A DNA stretch of 28,109 nucleotides from Prasinococcaceae sp. CCMP 1430. Taxonomy: Eukaryota; Plantae; Prasinodermophyta. The stretch spans positions 1-28,109 of the forward strand of contig RQSC01000003.1 of the NCBI GenBank assembly GCA_013416795.1. Reading direction: 5' to 3'. The notes below the pieces were generated by a model that was given only the letters and a program-made list of their open reading frames with translations, was not told the DNA's origin and made no database searches. Position numbers and translations under genes: made by a program. Within the stretch, counting starts at the first letter, position 1; each line of letters begins with the position of its first letter. Of this stretch, positions 18,438 through 24,533 are shown piece after piece.

Positions 18438-19309
18438 GGCGGCGGTTTGGCCCCGCGGGAGGGGGGGAGGGCCGGGGGGGGGAGCCACGCGCGTGCGATT
18501 GAGTGGATGCGTGGGCGGATGTGGCGCGCCACAGCGCGCGCACGCGTGGCGGTGCCACGCGCGTGCGATTGAGAGGGGGGGGGGGAAAGAGAGAGAGCGA
18601 GCGCTTGTGTGTTGGGGCTGGCGGCGACGTCGGCGGCCGAGGCGGCGGCGGCGGCGCGCTCCGGGGGGCTGCCGCATCCGCAGCTCCCTCTGGCGCCCCG
18701 TGCGCGAGGCACATGTGGGCGTAAGTGGTCGTGGGGGGTTGGGGGGGTTGGGGGGGAAGGGGCGCCGCCGGGCCGCTCGCGGCCGTCTGCCTGTCCCCGC
18801 GGCTCGGATGGACGGACGGAGGTCCCCCCGGGGAACGCGTGGTGCCGGCGCCAATCGGGCCGAGCGCGGTGCGCCCGAATCGTACCGGACAAAAACACGC
18901 GCATGCGTTCTGATTGAATTCTCACGAGGTCAGACTCGCCCGTGGGTAAAAACCCTCCGGCCGCGGGGGACCTATTCCGGACGCACCCCCCAACAAACAG
19001 CCGTTGGCAGCAGGCACGCACGCAGCGCGCGGGAGTTGAGGTTTTGGGGTTCTATTTGAGGTAGGGTCCTTACATGCGGCGCCTCGCGTGCGTTTTGACC
19101 ACGGCGGCGCGCGCGGTCGTGGGTGTTGTTGACCCGTTCGCGCGCGCGGGATGGGGCGCGGCACCCTTCGAACGGGCGCCATCAGAACGCATTCGGGGCG
19201 TCGCCCGCTCGCCGCGCGCGCGCTGTGTGTGCGCGGGGAGGGAGGGGGGCGGGGCACGCGGCGTGAAGTGACGCCGGCGCGCTGCACGCCCGCGACACGG
19301 CCGCGGCAG

Positions 19310-20211
19310 CGTATGAGGCGGCTCTCGGCGAGGGCACGGCGTCCCTGCGCCAGCTCGCCGCTGCGCAGACGGCCGCCGCCAGAGCGAGCGCGAGGCCCGC
19401 ACCTTTCATCAAGCCGCCGGCCGACCCCAATACGCTCCCGCCGGATGCGGCCGCGCTGGCGCGCCGCGCTGCTGGCATCTCACAGCTCGCCGTCGTGCAG
19501 GCGGCTGCCGAGGCGGCCGCGAGCTGGGAGGCTGCAAGCGCCGCCGAGGCCGCGCCGAAGAAGCCCGCGAAGAAACCGAAGCGCACGAAAGGCGTCGCGC
19601 ACCCCTCGCCCGCACCGCGTCACATGACTCTCGCGGACTTGGAAAGCAGCGGGGAGAATGGGCTGGTGTCTTTTGCCGTGGAGAAAGGGGTGCAGCGCGC
19701 GCTGGAGCTCTTGGCGGCTGGTGGGGTTGAAGGTGACGAATATATTCGGGCGCACACTCTCTCGCCACCCGAGGCGCGGGTGGCGCCCCCGGCCGCCGCG
19801 GTCAAGGCCGCGCGCGCGGCCGCGTCCGCTGCGGCGGTCGCTGCGGAGCGCGCGGACGCGTCGTGGGGCGACAGCGTGCTCGCAGCGGCGCTGGGCACCG
19901 CGCGCGACGAGCTCGTGCAGATCAAGGGCAAGGCGAAGGATGACGTTCTCGGTGGAAAGGAGACAGATGAGGCGATGGATGGGGGCGGGAAAGACGCGCG
20001 TGTCGCAGCGGGCGTCGCTGCGTCCGCGGCAGGCGCGCGCGTCGCCGCGGGCGAAGCAGCGGCGGTGCCGTCGGCCGATGCGGTCGTCGTCAGCGAGGGG
20101 GCGATGAGGACGGCTTGGGAGGCAGCTCGGGGGTTTTCGAGGGATGAGGAGGAGGTGGTAGGAAGAGAAGGGGGCACGGCGGCGGCGGGCAAGGTGGTTG
20201 GGGGGGGGTGA
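19310..20211 (+). CDS. Hypothetical Ala-rich protein, probable terminal exon; first exon unresolved
   Basis: Frame open from a candidate acceptor CAG at 19307-19309 to TGA 20211. Protein-like composition with a basic KKPAKKPKRTK patch; no domain recognised. Confidence 0.45.
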
Positions 20212-20269: not shown

Positions 20270-20410
20270 GCCTGATCGGTTACATGGCGCGTGCCGTCGC
20301 TCGAGGAGATGGCGTCGCCTGATCGGTTACGTGGCGCGCTCCGCCGCTCGAGCCAATGGCGATGCCTGATCGGTTACATGGCGCGCTCCGCCGCTCGAGC
20401 CAATGGCGTC
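20270..20410. repeat. 47-bp tandem repeat, 3 copies
   Basis: Units start at 20270, 20317 and 20364 with GCCTGATCGGTTAC[A/G]TGGCGCG. Confidence 0.92.
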
Positions 20411-20545
20411 GTCTCCGAGCGCGCTCCGCCGTGTCCCGCTTCTTTTGGTGTGAGAGCATTGCGACCTTCTGCTGTGCCGTCATCCTTTGGAGTCGCGCTT
20501 CCTCTGCTCGCCAGATGCGCTCGACGCCGCGCTCAACGGCGTCGG

Positions 20546-20776: not shown

Positions 20777-20839
20777 GCTACAGGAGGCCGTGGATGATGT
20801 TCAGGGCGGGAATTATGGCTTGCCCTCCGCTGCTTCACC

Positions 20840-20880
20840 CCCACCCACCCACCCACCCACCCACCCACCCACCCACCCCA
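20840..20880. repeat. (CCCA)n microsatellite
   Basis: Read directly from the sequence. Confidence 0.9.
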
Positions 20881-21207
20881 TCGTCTGCGGCGGCGCGCGC
20901 GCGCGTAAATGTTTCACGAGGGCGCGCTGCGACGCGACAGCCGGTGACATGGGCCGGCCGCGCGCGCGCTGCCGCCGGCCCGTGGTTGCAGCCGCGCCGC
21001 CATTTCGTGCCACGCGAAGCAGCCCGGCTTGGTCGGTCGGTCGGTCGATCGGCGGAGAGTACATAGAGGTTTTGGTGAATACCTCTGTCCATTAAAAAAA
21101 GTAACTCTTTCGTTTTGATATACGGATAGGGTCTTACCCCAATGGTGCATAAATTTTTGTGTGATAGGTCACTTCTAATCTGTGTAGCTATGGAGGAGTT
21201 TTTGGAC

Positions 21208-22598
21208 GGAGATTGTATGGTAAAATAGGAGGGAGATAGTGATATGGAGATATAATATGTTTGTGGTGGAGTGAGAAGGGAGATGATGTAGTTGTTGGAG
21301 TTAGAGTGGAAGATGGAATGATGTTTGTGTAGGTGTGGATGTGGTGTGTGGGTTTGTGTAAGTATTGGTGAGTTAGAAGAAAGAGAGATAGGTGGAGAGG
21401 GTGTGAGGGTAGTGGTAGGGAGGTGGGGTTAAAGGGGAGGTGGGGATGTCAGGACAGTATAGTAGAGGTGGATGAAGGGGGTGAGGGGAGTGAAGGGGAG
21501 GTGGGGATAAGAGGGAGGTGGGGATGTATGGAGATTGTGGTAGATGTTGATGATTGGGATGTGGATGAAGGAGGTTGTTAGAGTGGGTGGGTGATGTTAA
21601 GTTGGAATGATGTTTGTGTAGGTGTGGATGAGGTGTGTGGGGTTGTGTAAGTATGGTAGAGGTTGATGATGGGGATGTGGATGAAGGAGGTTGTTAGAGT
21701 GGGTGGGTTAGATAAAGTGGGATTGATGATTGTGTAAGTGTGGATGAGGTGTGTGAGATTGTGAAAGTATGGGTGTGTTAGAAGAAAAGAGGTTTGGGGT
21801 AGGGTGTGAGGGTTGTGTAAGGGAGGTGGGGATATGGGGTTGAAGAGGAGGTGGGGATGTATGGAGAATGTGGTAGAGGTTGATGATGGGGATGTGGGTG
21901 AAATGGGGATGTGGATGAAGGAGGTTGTTGTGTAAGTATGCGTGTGTTAGAAGAAGAAAGGTTTGGGGGGTAGGGGATGAGGGTAGTTAAGGTGAGGTGG
22001 GGTAGGTTAAAATGGAGATGTGAATGTATGGAGAATGTGGTAAAGGTTGATAATGGGGATGTGGATGGGGATGTAAGGAGAGTAGGGTAGAGGTGGATAA
22101 AGGGGATGAAGGTAGTGAATGGGAGGTGGGGTTAAAGGGGGAGTGGGGATGTATGGAAAAGAGGTTGGTGGGTAGGATGTGAGGGTAGTGATGGGGGAGG
22201 TGGGGATGTAAGGAGAGTATGGTAGTGGTTTTGGTGAATTTTATTGTAATATGTGGAAAATGGTGGGAAATGGGTGGAAATTAATGAAAATAATTGAAAA
22301 TTGAGGAAATGTTTGGATGTGTTTTGGGTAATATTGTTGGAATATTAGTATTATTGAATTTTGATGTAATATTTGTGTATTTTGATTAATATGTATGTTA
22401 AAATGTATGTACTGTATATTGTAAAGTTGGTGTAATTTAAAAAGTAGTTTTGATTAAAATATTAGTGAATGTATTTTGATATTGAAATAAAAAATAGGAT
22501 ATTTTGGAATATTATTTGAAATTTTGTGTTTATTGTGTTAGTTAAAAAAATTTGGATTATATTGTTTAGGGTTAGGGTTTGTATTGTATATTAAAATG
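21208..22598. repeat. Cytosine-depleted, strand-asymmetric block: G-rich patchwork repeat (~21240-22230) then an AT-rich tract (~22230-22600)
   Basis: Only four C on the + strand (21450, 21455, 21941, 22412). Recurring modules such as GAATGATGTTTGTGTAGGTGTGGATG (21317, 21605), GGGATGTGGATGAAGGAGGTTGTT and GGGAGGTGGGGATGT. No ORF in the track. Confidence 0.92.
22565..22580 (+). repeat. Interstitial telomere-like repeat TTTAGGG-TTAGGG-TTT
   Basis: Read directly; lies at the right edge of the C-depleted block. Confidence 0.6.
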
Positions 22599-22603
22599 CA
22601 TGC

Positions 22604-22609
22604 AAAAAA
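22604..22609 (-). terminator. Pol III oligo-T terminator of the tRNA gene
   Basis: T6 run starting 4 nt after the discriminator base. Confidence 0.8.
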
Positions 22610-22612
22610 GAG

Positions 22613-22714
22613 TTACCGCGCCGGGACTCGAACCCGGGTTTGGAGAGTGAGAGTCTCCTGTGATGACCACTTGAGCTTCTGAATCAAGGGATGCAGATAC
22701 TACACTACGCAGTA
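22613..22714 (-). tRNA. tRNA-Glu(CUC) with a 30-nt D-loop intron or insertion (22669-22698, boundaries slide by up to 3 nt)
   Basis: Acceptor stem UACUGCG/CGCGGUA plus discriminator A, anticodon arm GGAGA-CU-CUC-AC-UCUCC, T arm CCGGG-UUCGAGU-CCCGG. Removing 30 nt gives D arm GUGUAGUGGUCAUCAC and a 72-nt tRNA. Confidence 0.9.
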
Positions 22715-23265
22715 CGCGTTCTTTTTTTTGAACGCTGTTGATGTGACCGCTAACAGGCCAGTATACATACCATACAGACAATGCAGAGAGACGTTTGCGT
22801 TCATTTTGATATGCACATGCTGTAGTCGCCGCCGTTCCAGTCCCCCATGTGATATCCACCCGGACGCAGGTGCAAAGGAAACACTCTCTCGATCGATCAA
22901 ACGAACGAAGCCCGAAGTTACATTCGATATTGGTATCATCGCGAACATCAAAATTCACAGCACTTCGCACGAGCCTACGGCCCGGTTTCGCGGCGGCGGG
23001 CGCCCCGGGCGGTGGGGCGCGCAGGTGCCGCGCGGGCCGTTTTGCGGTATGGGGCACGCGCAGCCTTTGCAATCCGCGAAATTTACTCGCGACAGACACA
23101 CAGGCCCACCCCGCGCCGGCTATTCGGCCAACAGCCGGCGCGGCGGCCGGCAGAGCCTCACGTCGCTCGCAGGCCGCGCGCGGCGCCACTCGGCGGCGCG
23201 TACGCTGGCCTCCCTGGCCTCCCGCCACCGCCGCCGCCGCCGCCACCGTCGCCGCCTCCACCACG

Positions 23266-24533
23266 ATGGGCGAGTCTTCCATCCACTCCCTCTCCAGGCG
23301 CACCCTCGTCCTCATGCTCACGTACGGCATCGCCTCGGCGTCCATGCTCGTCGTCAACAAGGCGGCGATCACCATCATCCCCGAGCCGAGCCTGCTGTTG
23401 CTCACCCAGGTGGGCTCCACCGCGCTGCTCGTGGCCATCCCGGCCTCGATGGGCATCACGCCGTCGGCGGTGCGCCTCGTCCCAGACGCCGCCACGGCGA
23501 AGGCGTACTTCATGGTGGCGCTCGTCTTCCTCGCCACCATCTACTGCAACATTCGCATGCTGCAGTACGTCGGCGTGAACGCCTTTGTCGTCATGCGGTG
23601 CAGCACGCCGCTGGTGGTCTCCGTGCTGGACTACGTGCTCATGGGCCGCGAGCTGCCCAGCCGGAGGAGCGCCGCGGCGCTCGCCGGCGTGCTCGCCTGC
23701 GGCAGCCTGTACGTCCTCCTGCGGATGCGCGCGGCGACGGGGGCGGCGAGCGCGGGCGACGGCGACGCGGGCGGCCGGGTCGCGGCCGCGGGGATGTTCT
23801 GGTCTGCGGGTGCGTGCGGAGCCGTCGCAGCAGCAGCAGCAGCAGCACGAATACCGCCCCTGCACCTCATCGCCCCCCCGAGCACTCCCGCTGGCTGGCT
23901 GGCTGACTGGCTGACTGACGCTTGCAAAACCTCCGCCTTCCCCGCAACAACAACAACAACAACCCCCCCCACACACACACGCACACGACCAAAATTTTTT
24001 GTTGTTGTTGCTCCATCACAAAAAAAGCGTGGTTCGTCTCCTTCCTGACGGACATGCTCTTCGTCAAGCACGTGTGTGACACGCACCCCGCCAACGGCAT
24101 GGAGCGCACCCTCTACCAGAACGCGCTCGCGACGCCCGTGCTCGCGCTCGCGCTGGCCGTCGGCGCCGACGGGAGCGGCTCGGCCTCCGAGGCGGCCGGC
24201 ACTCTCGTGAGCGAGATCACCGGCCTCGCCATGGTGCTCGCCTCGTGCCTGGCGGGGCTCTGCCTCAGCTACACGGGGCTTTCGCTGCGCTCGGAGGTCA
24301 GCTCGACCGCCTTCGCCGTGCTGGGCGTCGTGTGCAAAATGGGATCCATCATCCTCAACGAGCTCTTCGTGGACCCCGAGAGGGACCTCTTCAGGCTGCT
24401 CGTGGTGGTCGGCGTGATCGTGTGCAGCTCGCAGTACTCGCAGGCCCCCAAGCGGCCCACGGAGCCGCAGCGGCTCGTCGAGGTCGAGCTGGCGGACGAC
24501 GAAGAGCGCGGCGCCGGCGGGAGCGACAAGTAG
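23266..24533 (+). CDS. Nucleotide-sugar transporter (GONST/GDP-mannose or GDP-fucose type, SLC35/TPT superfamily); exons 23266-23809, 24028-24533
   Basis: SMLVVNKAA, LLLTQ, IYCNIRMLQYVGVNAFVVMRCSTP, LYQNAL, SSTAFAVLGVVCK. A phase-1 intron joins FWSA|AWFVSF. TGTAA at 24630. Confidence 0.9.

Follow-up and report, generated by a model that had tools for sequence, protein, structure and literature searches.

We found that a 1391-nt block (positions 21208-22598) of the window analysed, a 28,109-nt stretch of contig RQSC01000003.1, is almost devoid of cytosine on its plus strand, that it is the interior of a repeat-bracketed element with a multicopy left end, which the initial annotation had missed, and that the plus-strand cytosines were very probably once present and lost as C>T. 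It is very unusual for nuclear DNA to carry a fixed, near-complete C>T change of one strand over 1.4 kb, and the more so given what is known of P. coloniale, with a Ts/Tv of 2.6, no AT bias, a low mutation rate and methylated C that is not hypermutable (PMC11884799). The block points to a hitherto unknown process that edits exposed single-stranded DNA in this lineage.

The cytosine-free block and the element around it

Recounting gave 384 A, 4 C, 566 G and 437 T in the block, with the remaining cytosines at 21450, 21455, 21941 and 22412 and a single CpG; the contigs of two sequencing runs agreed, bearing out what had been noted of four cytosines amid abundant G and of the near-absence of CpG. 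The window outside the block contains about 34% C, with a CpG observed/expected ratio of 1.21 and no other C-free run longer than 36 nt. The shortage of C among C+G reached a log10 P of -162 for the whole block and of -22 for the non-repetitive tail alone. The edges had been described as sharp, which is true of the right edge, but the left edge is graded, with C kept at 21188 and 21207. Similarly, the patchwork does consist of diverged repeat modules as reported, but its GGG and GGGG runs are no commoner than expected from 47% G, GG having an observed/expected ratio of 0.88, and canonical G4 matches in the block number only three.

The block is genuine, as far as short-read contigs go. Its resemblance to bisulfite conversion and the fact that no single contig crosses it entirely (the breaks coincide with exact internal repeats) might suggest an assembly or library artefact, such as bisulfite-like reads. 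However, 97% of sampled words are present in 22 public sequencing runs, which are probably lines of one clonal strain and hence technical rather than biological replicates, and the block is fully tiled by Logan contigs of two runs (X17 and X1), which show no difference from it, no C alleles and a depth equal to that of the flanks (single copy). The artefact proposed in the initial annotation is therefore hardly credible.

Read along the minus strand, the tRNA gene, its T6 run, 5 nt, the 15-bp repeat, the AT-rich tail and the patchwork are followed by the shared module, the second 15-bp repeat, then 10 nt able to form a weak stem, and lastly a T7 run (Table 1). Repeats occupy about 64% of the element, and the patchwork, with 47.5% G, has module lengths of 47, 78, 116 and 167 nt.

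Table 1. Coordinates of the block, its parts and its flanks
Feature	Position	Strand	Basis
Hairpin-forming 35-nt segment, C intact, outside the multicopy part	21054-21088	+	Three-letter BLAST, fold
Multicopy left flank	21094-21185	-	Summed contig depth 17-30x single copy, up to 10 contigs
T7 run at family boundary, putative 3' terminus	21094-21100	-	Sequence; other copies align from 21094
15-bp inverted repeat, unconverted, subterminal, 17 nt from T-run end	21111-21125	+	
Graded left edge, two C kept	21186-21207		
Non-coding G-rich patchwork of repeats (copies 60-89% alike), with three C in 1023 nt	21208-22230	+	
Direct copy of 21054-21088, four C>T, no C kept	22212-22247	+	Score 41 vs shuffle maximum 32
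AT-rich tail, 1 C in 368 nt, 22% G	22231-22598	+	
GAAA words, six, spaced about 10 nt	22256-22306	+	
Telomere-like motif, 2.5 units	22565-22580		
15-bp inverted repeat, converted, 4/4 C read as T, ends at last C-free base	22584-22598	+	
Terminator (T6) of tRNA gene; putatively the 5' flank and insertion site	22604-22609	-	
tRNA-Glu(CUC)-like gene, D-loop insert of about 30 nt, single copy	22613-22714	-	

The left flank (21094-21185) is a previously undescribed repeat with 17-30 copies. Summed contig depth over 21094-21149 was 17-30 times that of single-copy sequence and dropped by about 21165, while four contigs reached 21184 before running into unrelated C-containing sequence. The repeated unit spans about 60-90 nt, including the 15-bp repeat and the T-run. 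The copy in the window keeps its C, with one C>T and one G>A relative to the majority, both in CpG. Since this copy contains C and the homology ends near 21184, conversion begins where family homology ends and stops at the far repeat, so that both conversion edges follow the anatomy of the element.

Several minor sequence matches were also observed. The left flank holds an 8-nt match to a TCTAGGG-type telomere repeat, the telomere-like units at 22565-22580 could be either C>T-converted TCTAGGG units or a telo-box, and six words spaced about 10 nt apart in 22250-22310 would be E2F-like sites if T were changed to C; an E2F-like site lies near 23080. An internalised subtelomere, as suggested earlier, finds its sole backing in the 2.5-unit motif.

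Very probable loss of plus-strand cytosine as C>T

A three-letter parent, which the initial annotation had made a check on deamination, was not found elsewhere in the 28,109-nt window, but short unconverted counterparts are present at 21111-21125 and 21054-21088. When every C is read as T, which takes four conversions, the reverse complement of 21111-21125 agrees with 22584-22598 at 15 of 15 positions, and the converted repeat stops at the last base before the first flanking C. Only one in 5000 dinucleotide shuffles reached this match at the edge, and the same comparison yielded eight matches under C>A and five under C>G. Weaker inverted similarity extends inward to 21158/22546, with eight C>T and no C kept. 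In addition, 22212-22247 matches 21054-21088 as a direct copy with four C>T (three-letter BLAST E 2.4e-5).

The internal repeats, 11-40% diverged, show a C/T difference at no majority column. Of 43 derived alleles in the repeat modules, only two are C and no T>C change occurs, compared with the roughly 30% C expected (P 5e-5) from the spectrum of mutations in P. coloniale (PMC11884799), taken as that of the host, indicating that C was removed after or during divergence of the repeats. The three surviving C that could be aligned stand opposite A or G and none opposite T, and so look like later mutations. If the purge was a single event, four C represent only 0.3-2.5% change per site since then; strains differ by 1.2-1.7%. 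Cytosine is absent in every sequence context, with no sign of context preference. Thus, the earlier proposal of strand-specific deamination of persistently single-stranded DNA is supported as regards one-strand C>T, by the repeat pair, the hairpin copy and the derived alleles; more than one kind of single-stranded state could have been the substrate.

Could the block instead have never held C, having grown from C-free G-rich units with end matches due to chance? Many satellites are C-free on one strand by construction, about 2% of shuffles give a three-letter 15-nt match at some place in the tail, and the word statistics of the block are unlike those of converted ordinary genomic DNA. Nevertheless, such an origin is highly improbable, because the repeats diverged without gaining C (P 5e-5), the non-repetitive tail has one C against 80 G, and C>T appears in both of two independent homologies.

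Several parents and processes were rejected. A protein-coding parent was excluded by stops in all frames and by the absence of three-letter codon periodicity, for which converted real genes gave P values of 3e-4 to 4e-10, and converted ordinary genomic DNA by Markov word tests (z about 0); the lack of codon periodicity, together with the unlikeness to average genomic DNA after conversion, implies a parent that was non-coding and already purine-rich. A structured RNA, telomerase RNA or snRNA was likewise discarded, Rfam returning only the tRNA, and the fold of the 92-nt module was no better than shuffles on the plus strand (minus strand z -2.1). Methylation avoidance fails, and the selected unmethylatable element proposed earlier finds no support, since 485 would-be CHH sites are also without C and all four survivors lie in CG or CHG. 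RIP and methyl-C decay resemble the present case as C>T transitions in repeated DNA, but they are dinucleotide-specific and act on both strands, whereas here one strand is affected and G is intact (40.7% G against 0.3% C in 21208-22598); the initial annotation was right that strand-symmetric processes offer no explanation. Searches for the block gave no match in metagenomes or phages, and one chance match each, with nothing else, in viral contigs and bacterial genomes.

Resemblance to Helitron2 elements and rival origins

Helitron2/Helentron elements have asymmetric repeats of 8-15 bp, one 5'-terminal and one subterminal before a hairpin, and insert in T-runs without target duplication (PMC3627910, PMC11417382, PMC5148889); HINE subfamilies have their last 60 bp in common (PMC4067079), and non-autonomous HINE/DINE-1 copies have tandem-repeat interiors (PMC3627910, PMC4067079, PMC11417382, PMC5148889). 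The block resembles a HINE, with family membership being putative and judged from sequence features. As in HINE, DINE-1 and the Chlamydomonas Helitron-1N1_CRe, asymmetric repeats are near-terminal and subterminal, the 15-bp pair falling within the 8-15 bp of asymmetric terminal inverted repeats and being exact once C>T is allowed. Also shared with HINE/DINE-1 are the flanking T-runs (T6 and T7 on the minus strand) with no target-site duplication seen, the tandem-repeat interior, the lack of coding capacity and a 3'-terminal 60-90 nt common to the family, here the dispersed 17-30 copies of 21093 to about 21165. In contrast to these elements, one strand here is C-free, the repeat-to-end distances are slightly off and the hairpins are weak. 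Specifically, with true termini not fixed, the T-run is 5 nt away from the 5' repeat, where 0-4 nt is reported, and the T-run end is 17 nt away from the 3' repeat, where 20-60 nt is reported; the 3' stem has 4-5 bp (-2.1 kcal/mol), terminal hairpins reach -1 to -2 kcal/mol, a stronger hairpin 22 nt past the subterminal repeat is outside the common part, and the 5' end cannot fold after conversion. A DIRS/PAT tyrosine-recombinase retroelement was rejected, there being one direct repeat only and no B1/B2 pair. We therefore tentatively regard the structure as a 1.5-kb non-autonomous Helitron2/Helentron-like element of the HINE/DINE-1 type that, read on the minus strand, occupies about 22603 to 21094 within the T-run terminator of a tRNA gene and was deaminated at the donor site, a reading for and against which the evidence is nearly balanced.

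Helraiser nicks and displaces the top strand alone, starting at the 5' end, and its donor is resynthesised and used again (PMC5876387), so that the bottom strand is the one left behind. By analogy, a RepHel-type nick at the 5' end of the element might be followed by unwinding or resection of the top strand, which would expose the bottom (plus) strand as single-stranded DNA between 22598 and a point about 110 nt away from the 3' end, provided that peeling or resection outpaced refilling. Exposed plus-strand cytosines would then be deaminated in one or repeated rounds, most plausibly by a putative enzyme, and refilling would fix the T's, the present copy being perhaps a scar that serves no evident function. 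Because hydrolysis deaminates too slowly for one episode to suffice, an enzyme or very many rounds would be needed. Several observations count against this donor-site scheme: the peeled strand, the obvious target of a deaminase, is the other one; the Helraiser scheme refills the donor at once; the repeat distances (5 and 17 nt) are off and the hairpins weak; and conversion is near-complete and context-free, which exceeds typical APOBEC clusters. Moreover, the scheme explains neither the direct copy of the hairpin segment at 22212-22247 nor the exact inverted match of 10 nt that links 21101-21110 to the 3' end of the tRNA (22607-22616).

An ordinary TIR DNA transposon (MULE- or MITE-like) might instead have been broken at its right end, 22598, resected on one side so that the plus strand lay exposed, swept once by a deaminase in the manner of kataegis and rejoined to the tRNA side. 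The inverted similarity, which continues for about 48 nt and, after an 8-nt insert, for another 10 nt, would suit this origin, as would the polarity, C-coordinated clusters to the left of a break being located on the top strand (PMC6786661), and the similarity of the change since the purge (0.3-2.5%) to that between strains. Features of cut-and-paste TIR elements (MULE, hAT, Mariner, MITE) were lacking, however, in that the repeats are asymmetric to the family boundary and no target-site duplication was seen, although the right end may be truncated; only one short end is common to the family copies, the completeness is far beyond known cluster densities, and no G is lost to the right of the edge. 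We consider a broken transposon unlikely. Chronic R-loop or G4 formation, in which read-through from the left plus-strand gene yields G-rich RNA that displaces the plus strand for long-term deamination, with the convergent tRNA gene as the right barrier, appears quite unlikely as well. Its polarity fits, transcript contigs stop near 20830, about 380 nt upstream of the block, the G-rich strand has three to five G4 matches, and 14 nt separate the right edge from the 3' end of the tRNA. But 20830-23265 is covered by no RNA contig of two probable RNA runs (of little weight, as these are contigs, probably from poly(A) RNA), strand-specific loss is absent from the multicopy module and from the 250 nt closest to where the gene ends, an R-loop would be poorly held by the AT-rich tail, and a C>T excess of about 100-fold, as estimated from composition, would be required.

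A selected chromosomal element with inverted repeats on both sides, such as an origin or a small regional centromere, present once per chromosome and skewed by fixed fork direction or by selection, has a low probability, and the centromere reading is unlikely. The 17-30 copies of the left module compare with 20 nuclear chromosomes, the AT-rich tail has A-tracts phased at 10 nt, a tRNA gene is adjacent, and genes are absent from a 2.4-kb gap. On the other side, other copies of the left module enter C-rich sequence after 21184, the flanking genes lack a GC3 trough (GC3 0.96-0.98 on the right), methylation avoidance fails, and no second such block is named in the model-written notes on 668 windows, an argument of little weight.

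Known deaminase systems and neighbouring genes

The block can be compared with several deaminase systems. APOBEC kataegis of resected or break-induced-replication (BIR) single-stranded DNA shares with it C-only, strand-coordinated change of one strand, a kilobase-scale tract and the expected polarity; here, however, the change is near-complete, C is gone from every context, with no preference for TC or CC motifs visible, and the result is fixed in an alga genome. APOBEC3 hypermutation of retroviral or hepatitis B cDNA likewise involves massive one-strand C>U on a mobile element, but here an LTR, primer site, poly(A) tail or reverse-transcriptase link was not found. In Bigelowiella natans, also a marine alga, integrated viral DNA shows local extreme deamination-like mutation (bioRxiv 10.64898/2026.01.13.699255), but there both strands undergo A>G change specific to TpA, whereas the present process is C>T on one strand. 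Among algae, AID/APOBEC-like enzymes have a sporadic distribution (PMC5889660). We found no report of strand-wide conversion in Helitrons in the literature searched, and no paper in the open-access literature on the combination of a rolling-circle-like element with one strand stripped of C.

It is a doubtful but conceivable extension that a processive, context-free single-stranded DNA cytosine deaminase in Prasinoderma strips rolling-circle transposons of cytosine at the donor site. If true, this would be strand-specific heritable anti-transposon editing in the green lineage that branched earliest, and it would differ both from RIP and from animal APOBECs. Much as a natural bisulfite footprint does, the block would show precisely how far a stretch of DNA had been single-stranded in vivo and, if tied to Helitron2 ends, would reveal the exposed strand in a group whose mechanism is experimentally unexplored. 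It is also a concrete substrate for seeking deaminase-based genome defence in green algae.

An AT-rich tract abutting a tRNA gene had been noted previously; both the AT-rich tail and a tRNA-Glu(CUC)-like gene are present, but the latter was not called by ARAGORN and scored below threshold in Rfam (RF00005, 25.8 bits, E 0.026), both owing to the D-loop insert, and its cloverleaf fold has a z of -2.4. Its acceptor stem has an unusual start, TAC instead of TCC, and its D-arm is reminiscent of tRNA-Val. To the left, the unannotated gene at 19151-20211 had no Pfam match, and its transcribed 3' region contains three 47-nt tandem copies (20270-20411). To the right, 23266-24533 (plus strand) is a two-exon nucleotide-sugar-transporter-like gene with weak EamA and TPT matches, syntenic with Hsp110 in marine contigs L009-L013. 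Marine contigs match the flank at 98.5%, and the environmental P. coloniale-like contigs L009-L013 end near 23200, short of the block. P. singulare-like loci were not syntenic and had no skewed tract. The neighbouring Hsp110 is identical to a EukProt entry, and its nearest named relative is that of Prasinoderma singulare (73%). Together with the 98.5% match of the marine contigs and with some two dozen small runs from 2024, as would be expected of the mutation-accumulation lines of PMC11884799, this makes Prasinoderma coloniale the probable source of the DNA. In a P. singulare-like genome (L001-L008) the Hsp110 gene has an intron and lies next to argininosuccinate synthase and AAA ATPase genes.
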